Positions 12,267 through 33,295 of a DNA stretch of 64,000 bases are shown here, piece by piece. The translations under genes were made by a program, and so were the position numbers. The notes beneath the pieces were generated by a model. It saw only the letters and a program-made list of their open reading frames with translations, was not told the DNA's origin and searched no databases. The DNA is taken from sequence record MZ443783.1. The stretch is one strand, 5' to 3'. Numbering within the stretch: position 1 is the first letter of the stretch; every line of letters begins with the position of its first letter.

Positions 12267-13037
12267 ATGAGCAACGTTGATAAAACAATGCCACAAGGTC
12301 GCTGGGAATTTAACGAACCAGTTGCTGCTGTCTTCGATAACATGTTGCAAAACTCCATTCCTTCGTATGACCGTATGCGTGACCTAACCTATCGTCTTGG
12401 TCGCCAGTTCGTAACTCCAGGTACGGCCATTGTTGATTTGGGCGCATCGCTTGGTCGCGCTATCGAACCCTTCTGCGCTGAGTTTGGTGAGTACCATTAT
12501 ATTCATGCTGCTGACCGCCCTGAGCCAGACCGTGAAATCGGCAATCATTATTGCTGTTATGAAGTCGCACCTGCAATGCTTGAGCGTCTTCGTCAAAACG
12601 AAGTGCTGGTCAACGCCAAAGCGAAAATCAGTAGTGAGTCGCTGGTTGAAGTCGATACTTTCCGCTTCGACGAGCAGGTTGAGTGCTCCCTGATTTTGAG
12701 TGTGCTGACTCTCCAGTTCACTCCTATCGAACATCGCCAACACATTCTGGAGAAAGTGTACGACTCTCTGGAGAAAGGCGGTGCTTTCATTCTGGTTGAG
12801 AAAGTGTTGGGTGACGACAACTTCCTTGACCGTTTGCTGGTAGACACCTACTACGGCATGAAGGGCGACAACGGTTATTCGCAGGAATCTATTGCGACTA
12901 AGCGCAAAGCTCTCGAAGGCGTACTGGTGCCTGTGAAAGCTGCATGGAACGAAGAACTGCTGCGTAAAGCAGGCTTCAACCGTGTGGAGTGTTTCTACCG
13001 CGACCTGAACTTTGCTGGATGGATCGCAGTCAAATAA
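12267..13037 (+). CDS. cmoA: CmoA-like carboxy-S-adenosylmethionine synthase
   Basis: WEFNEPVAAVFDNMLQNSIPSY, VDLGASLG, TLQF, GGAFILVEK, KGDNGYS, KRKALEGV (Arg equivalent to E. coli CmoA R199), AGF, LNF; colinear with E. coli CmoA as recalled. Confidence 0.88.
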   Translation: MSNVDKTMPQGRWEFNEPVAAVFDNMLQNSIPSYDRMRDLTYRLGRQFVTPGTAIVDLGASLGRAIEPFCAEFGEYHYIHAADRPEPDREIGNHYCCYEVAPAMLERLRQNEVLVNAKAKISSESLVEVDTFRFDEQVECSLILSVLTLQFTPIEHRQHILEKVYDSLEKGGAFILVEKVLGDDNFLDRLLVDTYYGMKGDNGYSQESIATKRKALEGVLVPVKAAWNEELLRKAGFNRVECFYRDLNFAGWIAVK

Positions 13038-13048
13038 GGTAAAACGAA

Positions 13049-14095
13049 ATGAGCGTAAGTGGTGATATTTATAACATCCCTCAACCGTTCGCCATGTATT
13101 GTGGCAACTGTGAAACTCGTGCTCAGGCAAAAGTTGCCTCAGGCACAATCGAATGGGCGTCAGAGAAAGTCTGCTGCGTTGTTGCCGACGATAACGGCCT
13201 GTTCCCTGATGTGCCTCACGTCAACATCGCAAGCGTCCATGCCACAGATGCACGTACTCTGGTAATTGGCTGTGCACCGTTCGGCGGTAAGATTGACGAG
13301 CACATGGACCGCACTATTCGCAGTGCTATCTATCGTGGTCTGAACGTTGCTGCCGCGATGCACAATCGCCTGGCCGATAATCCTGAATACGTTGCGCTGG
13401 CCGAACAGTATAACGTCAAGCTGTATGACTTCCGTCATCGTCCTGACGCGTACCCTCTCGGTACTGGTGAGAAGCGCAAAGGCATTCGTCTGCTGACTGT
13501 AGGTACCGATAGCTCTTGCGGTAAGAAGTTCACGACGCTGACGCTGCACCGCATCCTGAAAGAGATTCACGAAGACACCGTGTTCTGCTCAACTGGCCAG
13601 ACTGGTTTCCTGATCAGCAACTGTGGTATCAACAACGATACGCTGGTGGCCGATTTCCTTGCTGGCGCTGCTGAGTCTTTATCGCCTGATGGTCCTGATG
13701 ATCGTATCTATCTGATTGAAGGCCAGGGTGCTATTACTCACCCAGCGTATACTGGTGGCAGCATGAGCCTGATTGCTGGCTCGCAGCCTGACTACTTCAT
13801 CATGTGTCATGCGTGGGGCCGTAAGAATCAGCTCGGTGTTAAACGCGCACCTGACCTTGCTTTTGAACTAAAGGCCAATCTGGACGCAGCGGCCATTCAC
13901 GGTCTTACTCCTAAGTATCTAGGCATCAGTATCAACTTCTCCGAGAGTGGCCTGACCCTCGAAGAACAAGACGCTGAGATGTGCGCCCTGGAGGACCTGT
14001 ACGATATTCCAGTGTTCGACCCATCGCGTGATCGTATCGTCATCAAAGAGATGGCACACCATCTCAAGACGACTGTAATATTCAGGGGCAAGTAA
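13049..14095 (+). CDS. DUF1611 family protein (DgcN-like N-acetyltransferase / P-loop)
   Basis: LVIGCAPFGG, GLNVAAAMH, RLLTVGTDSSCGKKFTT, STGQTGFLI, DFLAGAAE, LIEGQGAITHPAY. Confidence 0.85.
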   Translation: MSVSGDIYNIPQPFAMYCGNCETRAQAKVASGTIEWASEKVCCVVADDNGLFPDVPHVNIASVHATDARTLVIGCAPFGGKIDEHMDRTIRSAIYRGLNVAAAMHNRLADNPEYVALAEQYNVKLYDFRHRPDAYPLGTGEKRKGIRLLTVGTDSSCGKKFTTLTLHRILKEIHEDTVFCSTGQTGFLISNCGINNDTLVADFLAGAAESLSPDGPDDRIYLIEGQGAITHPAYTGGSMSLIAGSQPDYFIMCHAWGRKNQLGVKRAPDLAFELKANLDAAAIHGLTPKYLGISINFSESGLTLEEQDAEMCALEDLYDIPVFDPSRDRIVIKEMAHHLKTTVIFRGK

Positions 14096-14096
14096 C

Positions 14097-14966
14097 ATGG
14101 CTAAACATCCTCTTCGCAAGCTGTTTGAACAGCACGTAAAGAAAGAGGTCAAAGCCAAAGAAGTGGCCGTTCTGCTTTCGAGCGGCCTCGATGGTTTGGT
14201 TAGCGCACTCGCGGCGCACGATCTCGGCATGAAGGTACACGCCTTTACTTTTCAGATGGGCGATGACCAGAGCTTCGATAGCAAACACGCTGCAATCGTA
14301 GCCCAGAAAATGGGCTGGGAGTTCACGCTCGTTAAGGTGCCAGACTCTGATAGTGCAATCGCCAAAGGCTGGAAGACGTTGCACAAGAGTTTCCGCTGCA
14401 TCAAAAAACGTGATTACGAGTGTGCGTACCCTATGGTGTACTGCTACAAAGCGATCAAAGATGCAGGCTTGAAATACGTGCTTAGTGGTCTGGTGGCTGA
14501 CGGTTACTTCCTGTATAACCGAAACACGCACATTCAGAAAGTAAGCGGCCCGCACTCTATCGCTGAAAAGTATCACGCGTACCGCACCGAATACTTCCGA
14601 CCGTGGATCAAAAGCGGTAAGAAGTCGCTCGGCGTTGACGGCTATAACCCGAGCGGTATGCTGCAACACGAATTGCTGTGTGACCACTTCGGCCTTGTTC
14701 ACGTTAACCCGTGGATGCAGCCGAAAGTATTTGATTACTTCATCAAGTACACATGGCAAGAGTTAAATATGCCTAAGCAGAAAATGCCAATAACAACGGC
14801 TTGGGCAGATCACATCGCAGTTGTTGGACATCGTCCACATCGCGGCTATCAAACAGAAGCTGGAGTGCCTGCGCACTTCGAACGCTTACTGGATAATCCT
14901 GAGATCAACTTCAACGGCCGCAAGCGCATCATGGACGTGGCCCGCGATTGGTCAACGAGGACTTAA
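14097..14966 (+). CDS. asparagine-synthetase C-terminal-like ATP-dependent amide ligase with no glutaminase domain
   Basis: PP-loop VLLSSGLDG, HAFTF..D..HAAIVAQKMG, KYVLSGLVADGYF (cf. VLSGEGxDE), NPWMQPKV (cf. PFLDxxV). Confidence 0.78.
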   Translation: MAKHPLRKLFEQHVKKEVKAKEVAVLLSSGLDGLVSALAAHDLGMKVHAFTFQMGDDQSFDSKHAAIVAQKMGWEFTLVKVPDSDSAIAKGWKTLHKSFRCIKKRDYECAYPMVYCYKAIKDAGLKYVLSGLVADGYFLYNRNTHIQKVSGPHSIAEKYHAYRTEYFRPWIKSGKKSLGVDGYNPSGMLQHELLCDHFGLVHVNPWMQPKVFDYFIKYTWQELNMPKQKMPITTAWADHIAVVGHRPHRGYQTEAGVPAHFERLLDNPEINFNGRKRIMDVARDWSTRT

Positions 14967-14967
14967 T

Positions 14968-15582
14968 ATGTTTGTACACATCATTGACGGTGGTATTGGT
15001 GGGTCTTATGTTGCTCACCAGTTAATGGAAGCTGGGTTTAAATGTCGCGTTCACTCTCCGAATAACAATCGTGTTCGGGCAGTACACGCGCCCTACCCTT
15101 CGCTCTCTATGGGTCACACTGAACAGGAAATTGAAAAGCATATCGGTAACGTGCTTGGTACGTTTCGCGGTCTGTTCCTGATCAGTAGCTACGTTGGTTC
15201 GTTAATCGCAAATCAGATGATCGATCAATGTGGTCAGAGTGGAAACATCATCACCTGTGACGATCTCAAGTGTGGTTCAATACCTGTTGTTGCTTCATCC
15301 ATTTCTGTAAACGTCTATAAGAAGCAAAGACAACTGGCACGTATCTCGCATCGCCTGAAACACTTCGACATTGACCACGAGTTCATTGTCGCGGATAAGG
15401 CTGTGCGTTTTGCTGCTGGTTCGGAGTATGATGAGCACGATGCTCGAAAGGAGTTTAACAACAACGCCAAATTCCTTTCGAGTCCGTCAATGATTGTTGC
15501 TGCACACAAACTCGGTGTGAAGAACAGTATGTACCACAACTATGCGGGACTGGTGCGCGAGTTTCTTGAGAAGCGCCAGTAG
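14968..15582 (+). CDS. unknown; N-terminus resembles glutamate racemase (DSGxGG) or a Rossmann dinucleotide-binding motif
   Basis: MFVHIIDGGIGGSYVAHQLMEAGF; ATG 2 nt after the previous stop; racemase catalytic Cys motifs not seen. Confidence 0.6.
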   Translation: MFVHIIDGGIGGSYVAHQLMEAGFKCRVHSPNNNRVRAVHAPYPSLSMGHTEQEIEKHIGNVLGTFRGLFLISSYVGSLIANQMIDQCGQSGNIITCDDLKCGSIPVVASSISVNVYKKQRQLARISHRLKHFDIDHEFIVADKAVRFAAGSEYDEHDARKEFNNNAKFLSSPSMIVAAHKLGVKNSMYHNYAGLVREFLEKRQ

Positions 15583-18228: not shown

Positions 18229-19071
18229 ATGACAGTAATCAGCCCAATCCGATATCAGGGCAATAAGCGAAGCCTTATCCCGATTATTCTTGAGCACACG
18301 CCTTCTGTGCAGGACTGCCCTCGCATGGTGGACGTGTTTGGTGGTAGTGCTACTGTTTGCGCGAACATGCCGCAGAAGTTTCGCGTCTACAATGAACTGA
18401 GTCCGCAGGTGTACGATATCGTTAAGATGTTAGTCGAACAGGACCCGAAGAAAACTCTTGGTCAGGTCAAGCGACTGGTCAAACATTGGTGTTTGACTAA
18501 CAGCAACGAAGCGAACTACGATGCGTTTCGTACCGTCGTTCAGAAGAAGCGTACGGCTATACTGCATTACGTTGCACATCGCCACGCACACTCGAACATG
18601 TTGCGCTTCAATCAACAAGGTGTGTACAACGTAGGCTTTGGTGATCGCGGTCTGATTGGTAAGTTCGATGAACTGGAACACGAACTCACTACATTCCACA
18701 AACATATGCAGGGCGTTCACCTGACGAACATGAAGTACGGTAAGTTGCTTGGACGTTTAGGCCACCAGCTTGACTGTAACACGTTCTGCTACTTCGACCC
18801 ACCTTATTTGGCAAGCGGTGCGATGCAGTATGGTAAGTGGACCGAGCAGAATGAACGCAACCTGCTTACGACTCTGGAGCAGTTGAATCGTCGCGGCGTT
18901 CCCTGGATGTTGAGCAACGTTATCGAGCACCGTGAGTTCTCCAACGACCTGTTAAAGCGCTGGTTAAAGAAACATGCGACAACCGTGCTCTATCCAAACA
19001 AAAGCTATGCGATGAACAATGGCCAGAGCGGCTCGCATGGCACGATTGAAATTCTGGCAATGAACTATTGA
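18229..19071 (+). CDS. dam: Dam-like DNA N6-adenine methyltransferase (D12 class)
   Basis: SPIRYQGNK, VDVFGGSATV, YFDPPY, WMLSN, EIL..NY; GATC specificity not established. Confidence 0.85.
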   Translation: MTVISPIRYQGNKRSLIPIILEHTPSVQDCPRMVDVFGGSATVCANMPQKFRVYNELSPQVYDIVKMLVEQDPKKTLGQVKRLVKHWCLTNSNEANYDAFRTVVQKKRTAILHYVAHRHAHSNMLRFNQQGVYNVGFGDRGLIGKFDELEHELTTFHKHMQGVHLTNMKYGKLLGRLGHQLDCNTFCYFDPPYLASGAMQYGKWTEQNERNLLTTLEQLNRRGVPWMLSNVIEHREFSNDLLKRWLKKHATTVLYPNKSYAMNNGQSGSHGTIEILAMNY

Positions 19072-20551: not shown

Positions 20552-20939
20552 CGCCAGTGATGCAGAAGCGCGGGCGTATTATCAGAAACAACATGAACGC
20601 GCCGAAGCCACTATGCGAGAAATCTGGGCGCTGCGTGGCTGGACGATTCGCTGGGAGTGGCATAACGGTATCTGTGATGATTGTGAGTTCTTGTTCGATG
20701 AAACAGGCAAGCAGTTGTGTCCGTACCACGATGCCATTCCGCAAGAACGTGACGTATCGTACAATCTTGAGAAGCATCGCCTCAATGTGACGTACACCAA
20801 GAAATCTGTAAAATTGATTAACAAGCAAGATCCAAATCCAGTTGAAGGTAAAGCTGACACGTTACGCCAGGCTTATATCAATTGGCTGTTGGTCCTTGAG
20901 AAACAAAAAGCTGAGGAGAAAACGTGCGCTGCAATTTAA
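20529..20939 (+). CDS. hypothetical protein; start uncertain
   Basis: Packed ORF with CDDC..CPYH. Confidence 0.55.
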   Translation: MYLPLGDNASDAEARAYYQKQHERAEATMREIWALRGWTIRWEWHNGICDDCEFLFDETGKQLCPYHDAIPQERDVSYNLEKHRLNVTYTKKSVKLINKQDPNPVEGKADTLRQAYINWLLVLEKQKAEEKTCAAI

Positions 20940-21445
20940 CCGAACTACCAATGTCTGCGGAGCAGGCCGAACACATCATGGCGAGTGTGTTTACTCTGGC
21001 CGGTGCTTCTAAATCCAAGCGCCGTGCGACTGCTGCAATGCTCATTCATTTTCATGACGGCTTCCCTACTATTATCAGTAGCGGTGTCAACGGTACTATG
21101 CCCGGCGAAAGCAACGTCATGGAAACTCCTGACCTGACTCTCTCGCTCAACACTGTTATCCATGCAGAGGTGAACTGCCTCAATCGCATGGAAGAATACA
21201 GTCTGTGGGCAAACGAACAGGACATTCTGTTCTGCACTGATTCGCCGTGTCCTAACTGCTTGGCGGATCTCGAAGCCGAAGGTGTGAAGACCGTTGTGTA
21301 TGCGCGTGAGTATCGCCTGACTGATCATCTGGACGCATCTTCGATTAAGATGTTCTGTCTGGATATGAAGTCCGTTGAGCACCGTATGCTTCGCGGTATC
21401 GAGCGCATGAACGAAGTTATCGCAACAACACCAGCGTCTGAATAA
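20924..21445 (+). CDS. dCMP deaminase
   Basis: SSGVNG, VIHAEVN, TDSPCPNC, VVYAREY. Confidence 0.85.
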   Translation: MRCNLTELPMSAEQAEHIMASVFTLAGASKSKRRATAAMLIHFHDGFPTIISSGVNGTMPGESNVMETPDLTLSLNTVIHAEVNCLNRMEEYSLWANEQDILFCTDSPCPNCLADLEAEGVKTVVYAREYRLTDHLDASSIKMFCLDMKSVEHRMLRGIERMNEVIATTPASE

Positions 21446-28806: not shown

Positions 28807-29142
28807 ATGCAATACGATAAGACGAAAGACTATCAGCCGTTCAAATACCTGGGTGCGCCTAAGCTGCCTAACGTGGGCTTCATCGCCAGCACTGTAACAC
28901 TCGTCGAAAATGACGTGAACATCGGTGAAGACGAATGCGAGTTTGTATTTACGGTAGAGCAGATGAACTCGCTAGACCGAGGAACGATGACCTTCCGCGC
29001 GAAAGATGCAGGTGGAGGCATCAGTATTAAGAAATGCTCAGTCTCTGGATTGAAAATGGTAATTAAGCTGGAACGACGCGTAGTGCAGTTCGGCAAAGTT
29101 CAAGTCGAGTGGGCTACGACCAGCCGTAAATATCTTTATTAA
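28807..29142 (+). CDS. hypothetical beta-rich protein, possibly late
   Basis: 111-aa ORF behind the hairpin. Confidence 0.65.
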   Translation: MQYDKTKDYQPFKYLGAPKLPNVGFIASTVTLVENDVNIGEDECEFVFTVEQMNSLDRGTMTFRAKDAGGGISIKKCSVSGLKMVIKLERRVVQFGKVQVEWATTSRKYLY

Positions 29143-29183
29143 TCTGTAAAGACAGAGAAAGAGCAACCACAAGAGAAACGATA

Positions 29184-29882
29184 ATGGCAAAAATTGCTAA
29201 AACAAAGGAAGGGAAAAAGAAAAGCGCGATGAAGTTTGACTTGAAAACGCTCAAGACTTCACAACTGAAAGGCGCTGACTACAACCCTCGTTTCATTACA
29301 GACAGCCGCCTGAAAGCACTCGAAAGTTCTTTGGGTAGCTTCGGCGATCTGTCTGGCATCGTCTTCAACAACAGTGTCAAAAGCGGCGTATTGATCTCTG
29401 GTCACCAGCGTCTGAAATCCATCGACGGATGGAAGACTCGCATTGAGATTCAGAAAGCCGCCGACCAACACGGTACTGTAGCTCTGGGTTATATCCACGC
29501 TACGCACCCGAAGAAAGCCGAGAAGGTCATCAGCATCCCGTTGCGTATCGTTAACTGGACTGATAAGAAAGCTGAGTACGCTGCGAACATCGCGGCGAAC
29601 GCCCACGGTGGTGAGTTCGATAACAAGAAACTCGCCAAGCTGGTGGAGAAGCTGGACTTGACCACCATCAAGCCTCAGTTGCTGGGTCTTGACCCACTTG
29701 AGATTCGCGGCCTTCAACAAAAGCTGAAAGGTCAGGCTGCGGTTGTAGCTCAAGAGCGTGTCGGTAAAACTACAGGCCAGATGAACGGTAGTAGCGGTGC
29801 GTTCAAAGAGTATGGTACGGACGAAGTAGGTGAGAGTCTGAACTGCACCTGCCCGCGCTGTGGATTTAAGTTCGAGGGATAA
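29184..29882 (+). CDS. ParB/Srx-N domain protein with a C-terminal Zn ribbon
   Basis: LKGADYNPR, GIVFN, LISGHQRL, ANIAAN..GEFD, CTCPRCGFKF. Confidence 0.8.
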   Translation: MAKIAKTKEGKKKSAMKFDLKTLKTSQLKGADYNPRFITDSRLKALESSLGSFGDLSGIVFNNSVKSGVLISGHQRLKSIDGWKTRIEIQKAADQHGTVALGYIHATHPKKAEKVISIPLRIVNWTDKKAEYAANIAANAHGGEFDNKKLAKLVEKLDLTTIKPQLLGLDPLEIRGLQQKLKGQAAVVAQERVGKTTGQMNGSSGAFKEYGTDEVGESLNCTCPRCGFKFEG

Positions 29883-29883
29883 T

Positions 29884-32013
29884 ATGATCATCAAGCCGCC
29901 TACTATGAAGGAAATCAACAAGCTGGATAAACCCTGGCGTGGTATGAGTTTCTTCGCAGGTTGCGGTGGATCTTCTACCGGTCACAAGATGGCCGGTATC
30001 AACATCCTGTTGAGTAACGAGTTCGTGGATAGTGCCCGCGAGTCTTACGAAGCAAACCATCCGACTACTAAAGTGCTGCCGCATGATATTCGTCGTCTGG
30101 ACCCAAGCAAGCTCATGCGTTATTGCGGCTTGGCGAAAGGCGAACTGGATTTACTTGACGGCAGTCCTCCGTGCTTCACCGAAGACACCATCATTCATAC
30201 AGCAGACGGCATGAAGTTCATCTCGGACATGAATGTCGGCGATCAAGCAATGACCTCTGTTGGTCGTTACTTCCCTGTGTACGATACTATGGTTCGTCCG
30301 TACGTCGGCACGATGCACAAAATCGAAACTCTGCTGGGCGCAAACAACGCTACACCAGAGCATCCGTTCTTTGTCAGACGCAGCATTCCTACTGGCGGTT
30401 ACACTGACCCGTTCTGGTGTGATGCGAAAGACGTTCAGGAAGGTGATCTGTTAGGTAGCCCACGCACTACGCCTGACATGGGACTCGACGTGTATCAGTC
30501 GCAACTCGATCAGCTGCCGAAGCAGATTGCAGAGTGGAGCACATTCCCTGAGTTCTGGTGGATGGTTGGACACTGGTGTGATCGCGGTTCGATTGAAACC
30601 GTGAGTGGTGTTGAAGTCGTTAGCTTTGAATCTCACTCAAGCCTCGAAAATGCAATGATTGAGCAGGCGTTTGACGCGCTGAAAATCAGCAGCCTGAACC
30701 GTATCGACACGATGACAGCACAACGCAAAACGTTCCGTATCGTTATGGACGCAGAGCTGGTGCAGTTCTTACGTCGATTCGTATCTCAGGGTAACAACAA
30801 GTTCTCTCGTCGTCTGCCTGCGATTGTCTTCCACCTGACAGTCGAGTTGAAGCAACAATTCATTCTCGGTTGTGCTGGTCATGACTATGTGACTGGTATG
30901 GGTACCGGCTTGGCGATCACCTCAGATAGCCGTCGCTTCCTGATTGAGTTGAACTACCTGTGCTGTTCTGCATTCAACAGACCGCTGTTCGATGGTCTGA
31001 CTTGGGGCGACGTTTACTTCGGCAGCCCGATGACTCCGCGTGATCGTAACAGTGCTAAGCCTCTCATTGGCTTCCTGTTCCTGCAGGACGAGCACAACTT
31101 CTTCCACGAGTTCGATGACGCTGACCCGCATTTGTGGGTAGAAGTGATTGAGAACCTCGCGTATCAGGCAACCTGTGACGTGTATAACTTCTCCGTTGAG
31201 ACGGACGAGACATACGTTGCAAACAGCATGGTCGTTCACAACTGCAAAGGCTTCTCTACTGCTGGTGTGAAGGAAGAAGGCTGGGGCAAGGAAGTTAAAT
31301 ACAGCGACAACAAGTATCAGCAGGTAGATGACCTGTTCGATCAGTATTGTCGTATGCTGGAAGGCATGAAGCCGAAGGTGTTCACTGCGGAAAACGTGAG
31401 CGGCCTTGTGAAAGGTGCATCGAAAGGTTACTTCCTTGAAATCATGAAGGAGTTCGATCGAATCGGTTATTACGTCCGTGCGCCTATGCTCAATGCTGCG
31501 TGGCTCGGTGTGCCGCAATCGCGTGAGCGTATAATCTTCATGGGTGTACGCAAAGATGTTGCACACGCACTTGGTTACAAGACCGCTGCGACCGCTGTGC
31601 CGAATGTTATTCCGTGTGACAGCATGGCGTTCCTTGCCGATGCTCTGCCGCACATCCTGCGCTACAAGTCCACGAAGAAAGATATCATCACCTATCTTCC
31701 TGCGATGAACGGACCGATGCCTACGATTACTGCTGCCGATGCGATTGCATATGAGACTGCACGTTTCTCGTCTGCGGGATTCGTCGAAGACAACAAAGGC
31801 CATCGCCGTAAGCTGACTATCGACGAACTCAAAGTGATATCGGGTTTGCCCTCAGACTACAAACTGAAAGGCAAATTCGAAGAACAGTGGGAACGTCTTG
31901 GTCGTATCTGTGTGCCAGCAATGACACACGCCGCCGCTAAAGCGCTCATCGAACACGTCCTGATTCCTTACGCGAAGAAACGTAAGAAGAAGCCAGGCGA
32001 TATCTTTAAGTAA
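29884..32013 (+). CDS. C5-cytosine DNA methyltransferase homologue, intein-containing; candidate carboxymethyltransferase
   Basis: Motif I FFAGCGG, motif IV GSPP/CKGFS after splicing, VI AENVSGL, VIII PQSRERIIF, IX LTIDELKVISGLP, X ERLGRICVP. Confidence 0.88.
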   Translation: MIIKPPTMKEINKLDKPWRGMSFFAGCGGSSTGHKMAGINILLSNEFVDSARESYEANHPTTKVLPHDIRRLDPSKLMRYCGLAKGELDLLDGSPPCFTEDTIIHTADGMKFISDMNVGDQAMTSVGRYFPVYDTMVRPYVGTMHKIETLLGANNATPEHPFFVRRSIPTGGYTDPFWCDAKDVQEGDLLGSPRTTPDMGLDVYQSQLDQLPKQIAEWSTFPEFWWMVGHWCDRGSIETVSGVEVVSFESHSSLENAMIEQAFDALKISSLNRIDTMTAQRKTFRIVMDAELVQFLRRFVSQGNNKFSRRLPAIVFHLTVELKQQFILGCAGHDYVTGMGTGLAITSDSRRFLIELNYLCCSAFNRPLFDGLTWGDVYFGSPMTPRDRNSAKPLIGFLFLQDEHNFFHEFDDADPHLWVEVIENLAYQATCDVYNFSVETDETYVANSMVVHNCKGFSTAGVKEEGWGKEVKYSDNKYQQVDDLFDQYCRMLEGMKPKVFTAENVSGLVKGASKGYFLEIMKEFDRIGYYVRAPMLNAAWLGVPQSRERIIFMGVRKDVAHALGYKTAATAVPNVIPCDSMAFLADALPHILRYKSTKKDIITYLPAMNGPMPTITAADAIAYETARFSSAGFVEDNKGHRRKLTIDELKVISGLPSDYKLKGKFEEQWERLGRICVPAMTHAAAKALIEHVLIPYAKKRKKKPGDIFK
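30172..31242 (+). mobile_element. intein (357 aa) with degenerate LAGLIDADG blocks
   Basis: Starts CFTEDT, ATPEHPFFV, VYNFSVE..TYVAN, ends VVHN, +1 Cys; HEN remnants WMVGHWCDRGS and FILGCAGHD. Confidence 0.92.
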
Positions 32014-32021
32014 GGGCATAT

Positions 32022-32120
32022 ATGTTCTGGCTTGGACTTGGCCTTGGTGTCGTATTGGGTCTGATTATCGCAGCCCTGATTCTGATTTACTACTTCAAAG
32101 ACTTCGCTGTCTTTCGTTAA
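32022..32120 (+). CDS. 32-aa single-TM peptide (not in the ORF track)
   Basis: MFWLGLGLGVVLGLIIAALILIYYFKDFAVFR*, AAGGG RBS. Confidence 0.55.
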   Translation: MFWLGLGLGVVLGLIIAALILIYYFKDFAVFR

Positions 32121-32152
32121 TCAATAGGACAAGGAAGTCCAGGAGGATTGAA

Positions 32153-32719
32153 ATGTCATACACTATCAAGCGTGACCTGATGATCGCGTTCGTACAAAAC
32201 GATCAACTGCAATGCGCTTCAATTAAAGTGAAAGCAAGCGGCAACGAAGACGTGTTTATCTATAACGCGTTAGGTGGATTGCAGGCATTGCTCAACACGA
32301 AGATCTTCACGCAGAAGCCTACGGACATTGACCTGCTGCCGACACTTGAGTATCGTCAAGCTGCGCACTGCCTGTACTCTGACACGGGCATTCTGAAACG
32401 TCTGGAGAACATCTTCTCCAAAGACGGCGTGACAATCAAACTGGTCGATAAGCAAAAAGACAGTGTGCTGTCCGTTGCCTCCCTGTTCTGGATTGATCGC
32501 AAAGACATGGTTGCCTGTCAGGTGCTTGAGACAGACCTGGAAAAGCATGACAAGAAAACGTTAATCGTCACCGAAGACCTCGATGTTGGTTACGTTAACT
32601 CGCCTGTTGTGATTCCGTACGATGCGGACGCCCAGTGTGTTCACGATACCTATCTGTGTGAGCGCGTGTATACTCTGCACGGCTGGAACGAAACCGTCAC
32701 CTGCGCTGTAGGTAAATAA
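32153..32719 (+). CDS. hypothetical protein
   Basis: GGAGG RBS. Confidence 0.7.
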   Translation: MSYTIKRDLMIAFVQNDQLQCASIKVKASGNEDVFIYNALGGLQALLNTKIFTQKPTDIDLLPTLEYRQAAHCLYSDTGILKRLENIFSKDGVTIKLVDKQKDSVLSVASLFWIDRKDMVACQVLETDLEKHDKKTLIVTEDLDVGYVNSPVVIPYDADAQCVHDTYLCERVYTLHGWNETVTCAVGK

Positions 32720-32720
32720 C

Positions 32721-32888
32721 ATGGCACGCTACCCGATAATCTTCTTCGCTACATGGATTCTGGTAGCGTACTCGTTATCGACAGTGGACGTTTCTGTGGA
32801 GTGGTGTGAAAAGATAGGCATGGTATGTGCTGCGTTCTTCACCCACTTTGAAATGAAATGGCAGCGCTTTATCAAGGAGCAACAATGA
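32721..32888 (+). CDS. 55-aa hydrophobic peptide (not in the ORF track)
   Basis: MARYPIIFFATWILVAYSL..; fills the gap and overlaps the next ATG. Confidence 0.45.
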   Translation: MARYPIIFFATWILVAYSLSTVDVSVEWCEKIGMVCAAFFTHFEMKWQRFIKEQQ

Positions 32889-33295
32889 GTAAGCGCCAAG
32901 AAGCAATTGCTATACTGAAAGAGTTCTTCTTTGACTTCCAACGAGGTTTCGTTCGCTTCGACTACAAAGAAGGTCTGTCTTCGTTTCAATTTCACGTTGA
33001 TGAAATCCGTGAAGTCCAGATTCACACAGGCGAAGGTATCAATAAAGCCAATGGCGATATCATCCTGGTGTCTCGCGTAAACATTGATCTCATTGGTGGT
33101 GGCTCTGCGCATTCGTGCCCATTGCACCCTGAGAGAGGCCTGGAAAATTTAAAGCGTCTTGCATCGGCCTTGCTTCTGCTGCGAGACTCTGCCTGTGGTC
33201 TCCCATACGCTAACTATGCGGTGAAGGCTGTAGAGACAAAGTTCTATCTCAATCCGCCTACAGTAAACTGGCCGGTTGAATCTCCCGCCGAGTAA
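32885..33295 (+). CDS. hypothetical protein
   Basis: AAGGAG RBS before ATG 32885. Confidence 0.6.
   Translation: MSKRQEAIAILKEFFFDFQRGFVRFDYKEGLSSFQFHVDEIREVQIHTGEGINKANGDIILVSRVNIDLIGGGSAHSCPLHPERGLENLKRLASALLLLRDSACGLPYANYAVKAVETKFYLNPPTVNWPVESPAE

Follow-up and report, generated by a model that had tools for sequence, protein, structure and literature searches.

The window analysed here is a stretch of 64,000 nucleotides from the Erwinia jumbo phage pEa_SNUABM_28 (MZ443783, 267 kb), whose sister species are placed in the genus Alexandravirus. The region 29000-33000 of the window is common to some 45 relatives among the jumbo phages of Erwinia amylovora and Dickeya solani. It holds a gene for a protein of the C5-cytosine methylase family in which an intein is inserted at the catalytic cysteine. 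The gene very probably encodes a CmoX-family carboxymethyltransferase acting on DNA cytosine, which would use carboxy-S-adenosylmethionine (Cx-SAM) as its cofactor. The reference enzyme is SpCmoX of Synechococcus phage S-B43 (PDB 8YF3), a DNA cytosine C5-carboxymethyltransferase (Yang et al., Nat Commun, December 2025, PMC12783734). The gene and its parts are listed below.

29884..32013, plus strand: predicted CmoX-family DNA cytosine C5-carboxymethyltransferase precursor, intein-interrupted, 709 residues from the ATG at 29884, Pfam PF00145
29884..30171, plus strand: N-extein, with motif I FFAGCGGSS and the end ...LLDGSPP, aligned to residues 22-97 of 8YF3
30172..31242, plus strand: intein of 357 residues, with Cys1 (CFTEDTIIH...), block B TPEH and the C-terminus ...YVANSMVVHN
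31243..32010, plus strand: C-extein, with the catalytic Cys, the loop GWGKEVKYSD, ENV, QSRER, the target-recognition region and motif X ERLGRICVP
31243..31248, plus strand: catalytic Cys (also the +1 residue of splicing) and Lys98, equivalent to M.HhaI Q82 and SpCmoX S99 by sequence and alignments
31294..31296, plus strand: Val114 in the numbering of the spliced protein, equivalent to SpCmoX K123, in a family-specific extension of the catalytic loop
31903..31905, plus strand: motif X Arg, equivalent to SpCmoX R350 and M.HhaI N304, the predicted ligand of the Cx-SAM carboxylate by the alignments and its role in the SpCmoX crystal

The longest open reading frame (ORF) of the transferase gene runs from a GTG at 29860 to 32013. 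The start is placed at ATG 29884, since the equivalent ATG is annotated in orthologues, including the orthologue of pEa_SNUABM_16 (99% identical). The PF00145 domain (C5-cytosine methylase, E 1.7e-38) is matched in two pieces, with the intein/Hint matches in between. A Glu and an Asp of the N-extein align with E47 and D69 of SpCmoX, both of which have cofactor-binding roles (PMC12783734). At the splice junction the codons are AAC for the Asn that ends the intein (31240), TGC for the catalytic Cys (31243) and AAA for Lys (31246), followed by GGC TTC TCT (G-F-S); at motif X they are GGT for Gly (31900) and CGT for Arg (31903), followed by ATC TGT GTG CCA (I-C-V-P). A first-pass annotation, made from the letters of the window alone, had read a Lys (31246-31248) after the Cys of the spliced catalytic motif and an Arg (31903-31905) in a motif X of the form ERLGRICVP. 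The codons bear out both readings, and for the catalytic motif, GSPPCKGFS in its spliced form, homologues that lack the intein agree.

The intein lies between Pro96 and the catalytic Cys, and this Cys is the +1 residue of splicing. The signature of a class 1 intein is complete, with Cys1 (CFTED), TPEH, VVHN and then Cys+1. The intein-free homologues P0001 and P0002 (71% identity) are colinear over the junction and carry uninterrupted GSPPCKGFS and GSPPCKGYS, which confirms the splice junction. The site is also empty in phage PaBG, whose cmoX is an uninterrupted gene of 1008 base pairs. We infer that the precursor splices. The gene could instead be inactive, either because the intein does not splice or because the whole is a decaying remnant. 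Consistent with this, the intein profiles score below their gathering cut-offs (Pfam Intein_splicing E 3.9e-7, 30.5 bits, cut-off 35.8; Hint_2 E 3.4e-4, 21.5 bits, cut-off 28.4) and no endonuclease domain is recognised in the intein by Pfam; compared with the PDB on its own, the intein finds a best match of E 0.21. However, the frame of 709 codons is intact, every element of the intein signature is present, the protein is identical at 708/709 positions in the sister species pEa_SNUABM_16, the Erwinia and Dickeya relatives keep both exteins, separated from each other, and other members of the family have different inteins at the same SPP/C site (~254 residues in P0005, ~166 in P0020). Inactivity is given hardly any credence on these grounds.

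About ten of the 150 representatives over which the count was made are split at SPP/C, and the catalytic Cys appears to be an insertion hotspot for inteins in the CmoX branch. Inteins of varied size were observed at this site in P0005, P0020, P0242, P0243, P0245, P0258, P0263, P0269, P0279, P0331, P0379 and P0383. A divergent intein allele in pEa_SNUABM_16, where the DNA match falls into two pieces, was considered and rejected; the protein has the near-identity given above, and it is DNA further downstream that diverges. The literature searched gave no published account of an intein inserted at the SPP/C site. The terminase large subunit of the same phage (2540..5368, 942 residues) is a second intein candidate, with an Intein_splicing match over residues 226-405 (E 5e-5, below the cut-off); this weak match agrees with the remark in the PaBG paper that terminases of this phage group carry inteins.

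The spliced protein was compared with proteins of known structure by sequence, profile and fold. Its best sequence match in the PDB is SpCmoX, 8YF3 (E 1e-59), followed by M.HaeIII (1.7e-20), and the profile of 101 homologues matches 8YF3 with E 1e-93. An AlphaFold2 model, whose input alignment was without SpCmoX, has a predicted local distance difference test score (pLDDT) of 93.6 and a predicted template modelling score (pTM) of 0.92; Foldseek with this model places 8YF3 first (E 1e-27), with M.HaeIII and M.HhaI behind. In the pairwise HMMER alignment of the spliced protein to 8YF3 the Arg at 31903..31905 falls on R350, and F25, E47, F48, D69 and C98 fall where the CmoX paper names them, which serves as a cross-check of the numbering. 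The profile alignment of the 101 homologues to M.HhaI (PDB 10MH and others), with positions counted on the printed alignment, matches the residue that follows the Cys with Q82 and the motif X Arg with N304, and M.HaeIII has G-N opposite the G-R of the window. The by-eye alignment of the first-pass annotation, which had assigned both residues to the cofactor pocket, was thus right. S, P, P and C of the SPPC motif are invariant among the 101 homologues, and the Arg column holds R in 97 and N in 4. For features of single residues such as these, conservation is the criterion and a chance test is not applicable.

The meaning of the Arg follows from work on the related enzymes. In M.HhaI, Gln82, Tyr254 and Asn304 adjoin the transferable group, and the change Q82A lowers methyl transfer about 16-fold (Lukinavicius et al., PMC3526304); the background that the first-pass annotation had given for the M.HhaI pocket holds, as does its statement on M.MpeI, whose engineered variant N374K accepts Cx-SAM (cited in PMC12783734). 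SpCmoX makes 5-carboxymethylcytosine (5cxmC) from Cx-SAM in vitro and in E. coli, where the activity needs cmoA (PMC12783734). It does not use S-adenosylmethionine (SAM), only Cx-SAM, and its R350N mutant is inactive (PMC12783734). In the crystal, Arg350 stands in place of Asn304 of M.HhaI and contacts the carboxymethyl group, or carboxylate, of Cx-SAM (PMC12783734); it is the only residue that the paper names as carboxylate ligand. Homology to SpCmoX, with the Arg on R350, and homologues of CmoA and CmoY in the phage itself are the grounds on which the gene is, with high probability, assigned as a natural, intein-split Cx-SAM-dependent DNA cytosine carboxymethyltransferase of the CmoX family.

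The putative partner genes, and the genes that stand with them, are as follows.

12267..13037, plus strand: CmoA homologue, predicted source of Cx-SAM, with matches to TIGR00740, 4GEK and SpCmoA
13049..14095, plus strand: P-loop protein of the DUF1611 / DgcN-like kind, encoded after CmoA and before the ligase, Pfam DUF1611 E 6e-46 and DUF1611_N E 2e-18
14097..14966, plus strand: CmoY-like ATP-dependent PP-loop amide ligase of the asparagine-synthase type, PF00733 (Asn_synthase) E 2.8e-13
14968..15582, plus strand: ORF of 204 residues after the ligase (orf204), an uncertain member of the system, without a family match
29184..29882, plus strand: ParB-like protein (ParB N-terminal domain) directly upstream of cmoX, PHROG 620 E 1e-32

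The CmoA homologue matches E. coli CmoA (4GEK) over residues 11-256 with E 1.4e-30 and is 30% identical to SpCmoA, which was assayed (E 3e-29). Its segment ATKRKALEG aligns with SQKRSMLEN of 4GEK, and the Arg equivalent to R199 is kept. A functional role of R199 in E. coli CmoA was reportedly described by Kim et al. in 2013. The CmoY-like ligase is 33% identical over 276 residues to SpCmoY (E 4e-50), the ligase that adds glycine to 5cxmC (PMC12783734), and it matches the 'putative asparagine synthase' of S-B43, which is located between cmoA and cmoX in that phage. A natural link of transferase and ligase is seen in P0241 (678 residues), in which a CmoX with the K-type and Arg-type pocket is fused to an asparagine-synthase domain. 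The stop of the ParB-like gene, which has no Pfam match, lies 1 nucleotide before the start of cmoX, and the order ParB then CmoX recurs in PaBG and in the metagenomic contigs L006-L008. In PaBG and in contig L008, ParB, CmoX, CmoA and the ligase form a single cluster. ParBc proteins often accompany CmoX, and an AMP-forming amide ligase is a frequent, not an obligatory, partner (PMC12783734); the PaBG paper gives asparagine synthase only as a metabolic gene. Among GenBank phages, matches to CmoA and to CmoX fall largely in the same groups (48 records each for Erwinia, 2 for Dickeya and 6 for Synechococcus), and both are also found in PaBG, Yersinia phage fHe-Yen9-02 and Streptomyces phage TurkishDelight; CmoA is found as well in groups without CmoX matches, such as Staphylococcus phages. 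Co-occurrence with cmoA, which the first-pass annotation had put forward as a check, is therefore seen, and it has already been reported at scale (PMC12783734).

An ordinary SAM-dependent methyltransferase that makes 5-methylcytosine, in which Arg and Lys are incidental, would have all the core C5-methyltransferase motifs that are present here, and the GenBank relatives are annotated as DNA-cytosine methyltransferases. The exchange of Asn for Arg is, however, the family signature of a proven carboxymethyltransferase with no use of SAM, the canonical Gln is lost along with the Asn across the family, and the phage has its own CmoA and a CmoY-type ligase. An ordinary methyltransferase is accordingly regarded as very improbable. 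Several observations do weigh against the assignment to CmoX, in addition to the intein profiles below cut-off. Overall identity to SpCmoX is 38% and the target-recognition region could not be aligned to that of SpCmoX in the pairwise comparison, so that the target sequence, and even the cofactor preference, could differ. The CmoA homologue scores below the equivalog cut-off of TIGR00740 (E 9e-43, 146.7 bits against 193.3), and the ligase has a variant PP-loop, SSGLDG, against SGGVDS in SpCmoY and SSGVDS in PaBG. The genes cmoA and cmoY lie 17 kb from cmoX and do not form a single operon with it as in S-B43, and a search of the literature for modified DNA or resistance to restriction in Alexandravirus, AD1 or Y3 gave nothing relevant.

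The first-pass annotation had gone further and proposed that Lys98 and the motif X Arg jointly form a site for the carboxylate, which would make the enzyme a natural carboxymethyltransferase. The carboxymethyltransferase part stands, on homology and gene context; the part on Lys is not supported, as the residue that follows the Cys in SpCmoX is Ser (SPPCSAFS). Among the 101 homologues this column holds K in 38, A in 28, S in 28 and Q in 4, and K in 38, A in 28 and S in 27 of the Arg-type homologues. On the maximum-likelihood tree, K at this position (C+1) needs at least 4-5 changes, and even nearly identical proteins, such as P0017 and P0040, can be told apart by K or S here. This interchange of K, A and S, together with the Ser of an enzyme that uses Cx-SAM only, means that Lys is not supported as a requirement. 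In the broad sample (136 representatives scored, from clusters at 50%), Q occurs with N in 42/49 and a residue other than Q with R in 85/87 (Fisher 3e-25); this test and the other Fisher tests on residue covariation are uncorrected for phylogeny. Judged by these alignments, both pocket positions change together, the rule at the first of them is 'not Gln' and not 'basic', and Lys is an option at the level of clades, not a determinant of cofactor choice.

Covariation with K at C+1 is strongest at position 114, which is Val in the window (GWGKEVKYSD) and K123 in SpCmoX. It lies in an extension of the catalytic loop that is specific to the family; M.HhaI and M.HaeIII are without it. Among the 97 close homologues with the motif X Arg, K or R is found at 114 in 59/59 without Lys98 and in 7/38 with it; none of the 97 lacks both bases, where ~19 would be expected under independence (Fisher 6e-19). 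Sister pairs swap C+1 and 114 jointly, and the independent pairs all go in the same direction, although they are too few for a sign test. The relatives of SpCmoX have Ser with the loop Lys in all 106 that could be scored. A strict rule that every Arg-type enzyme has either Lys at C+1 or a base at 114 was tried and failed in the broad sample, where 16 of the 74 Arg-type enzymes without K lack a base at 114. The association between the two positions persists there (Fisher 2e-5), and in view of the exceptions the anticorrelation is given only as an association. Relatives of the Q/N type, too, commonly have a basic residue at 114, and charge at 114 is thus not specific to the use of Cx-SAM.

The same data bear on whether Lys98 and the Arg are both needed for the use of Cx-SAM, as a joint anion-binding site would have it. 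The M.HhaI equivalents of both residues adjoin the transferable group, and Lys98 could reach the carboxylate; the close Arg-type enzymes without Lys98 are, as given above, all basic at 114, and two Q+N 'revertants', P0103 and P0116, are without either base, which hints that Lys is not neutral. The Ser of SpCmoX, the repeated exchange of K, A and S on the tree and between near-identical proteins, the 16 exceptions of the broad sample, the basic 114 of Q/N-type relatives and the naming of Arg alone as carboxylate ligand (PMC12783734) argue against the joint site, which is considered unlikely. The alternative view of Lys98 is that it may stand in for the loop Lys. As a second positive charge, it may help the loop to close over the carboxymethyl group or may bind this group directly; loop closure, contact with a DNA phosphate and binding of the carboxylate may each be the role of the loop charge. 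It is put forward as a tentative possibility, rated below even chance for the two readings taken together, that Lys98 is a relocated loop Lys within a need for charge at two sites, or else that Alexandravirus makes a derivative of 5cxmC other than that with glycine, which varies with the ligase cassette. If true, the former would give a two-site charge requirement of CmoX enzymes that is absent from the 2025 paper.

Other types of pocket were observed in the family. P0103 and P0116, which the tree nests in the Arg-type clade, have PCQ and GN again, with HAD/HGD in the loop instead of YSD, as if returned to methyl transfer. A third type, SPPCE(P)FS...ERLGD, is acidic at both the Q82 and the N304 position (P0298, P0305, P0320, P0325, P0339 and P0368); SPPCD with G-L/M/Q (P0259, P0366 and P0370) and one SPPCA with G-K (P0382) were also seen. 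The acidic-type loci L009-L012 have phage-like contexts, with ParB_N just upstream in L010-L012, and neither CmoA nor a ligase was found within 8 kb of them. The cofactor of the acidic type could be a different derivative of SAM.

The DgcN-like protein matches the NCBIfam DgcN model with E 1.8e-83, below its cut-off, and PDB 7XRJ with E 7e-52; a literature search on DgcN/DUF1611 found only unrelated papers. The gene is absent from the sister species pEa_SNUABM_2, in which a different cassette (L004 2064..2927) takes the place of 13049..14966 of the window next to a CmoA that is 98% identical. The ligase of pEa_SNUABM_2 is of the PaBG type, 43% identical to that of PaBG and 23% to that of the window, and is followed by orf204. 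The copy of orf204 in the window is 75% identical to the one after the swapped ligase and has no similarity to its positional counterpart in PaBG. Both types of ligase occur across the Erwinia phage group. The swap of the ligase cassette between sister species suggests that close relatives attach different amines to 5cxmC, and the product of the predicted CmoA, DgcN-like and CmoY-like pathway of Alexandravirus may be other than the glycine amide. Elsewhere in the window there are an N6-adenine DNA methyltransferase of the D12 class (Pfam E 4.9e-25) and an ORF with an orthologue that bears the annotation dCMP deaminase (18229..19071 and 20924..21445), and more than one kind of DNA modification may be present in this phage.

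The following mechanism is proposed. The intein would splice out with the catalytic Cys as the +1 splicing nucleophile, and the same Cys would then attack C6 of a flipped-out cytosine, after which C5 attacks the cofactor, as in ordinary C5-methyltransferase chemistry. The cofactor would be Cx-SAM, and the product in this phage 5cxmC. The motif X Arg that replaces the canonical Asn would bind the carboxylate of Cx-SAM, as it does in SpCmoX. Cx-SAM would come from the CmoA homologue of the phage and possibly also from the CmoA of the host. The CmoY-like ligase probably then amidates the carboxyl group, the DgcN-like protein possibly contributing a further step, and the hypermodified cytosine would shield the phage DNA from host nucleases. 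K, A and S would be interchangeable replacements of Gln, the loss of which would disfavour methyl transfer and make room for a larger group. Lys would not determine the cofactor; it may contribute a second positive charge, which in other members sits in the catalytic loop.

The central idea, a natural carboxymethyltransferase, was already published in December 2025 (PMC12783734), where 5,615 candidates are counted, and the protein of the window is a new member of the CmoX family. The supplements of that paper make no mention of Erwinia, PaBG, an intein or the Lys. As far as its text was searched, the intein at the catalytic Cys, the alternation of K, A and S with its anticorrelation to the loop Lys, the presence of a DgcN-like gene within the cluster and the swap of the ligase cassette are likewise absent from it. 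The assignment would place hypermodification to 5cxmC or its amide in a large and well-sampled group of jumbo phages (Erwinia, Dickeya, Yersinia) and in Pseudomonas phage PaBG. Some of them are under development to control fire blight, and modified DNA affects escape from restriction, sequencing and cloning. The family also offers natural variants for enzyme engineering, with K, A or S in place of Gln82, inteins that interrupt the protein at the catalytic Cys, and ligases that have been swapped. Two pocket residues, read without tools, pointed rightly to a very probable switch of cofactor.

SpCmoX is the nearest known system and the best match by both sequence and fold. The window enzyme shares with it the C5-methyltransferase fold, SPPC, Arg at the N304 position (ERxGR), the loss of Gln after the Cys and the extended loop GWGK..YSD, and homologues of CmoA and CmoY are present in the same genome. 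It differs in having Lys where SpCmoX has Ser after the Cys, Val where SpCmoX has K123 at loop position 114, and an intein; the target-recognition region of SpCmoX, whose target is GC, is the part that does not align. The gene order also differs, with cmoX distant from cmoA and cmoY, a ParB-like gene directly upstream and a DgcN-like gene between cmoA and cmoY. M.MpeI N374K resembles the window enzyme in having a basic residue in place of the motif X Asn, which in M.MpeI allows the use of Cx-SAM; unlike the window enzyme, it is engineered, carries Lys and not Arg, targets CpG and is of mycoplasma origin, and P0382 is the one natural relative of the GK type among the representatives. M.HhaI and M.HaeIII have the same fold and catalytic motifs, but read PCQ and GN where the window enzyme has PCK and GR; their catalytic loop is shorter, and they use SAM. 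The active-site inteins of phage replication and packaging proteins share with the present one the class 1 signature (Cys1, TxxH, HN, Cys+1) and insertion at the most conserved catalytic residue, whereas the present one interrupts a DNA-modifying transferase, whose own nucleophile serves as the +1 residue.

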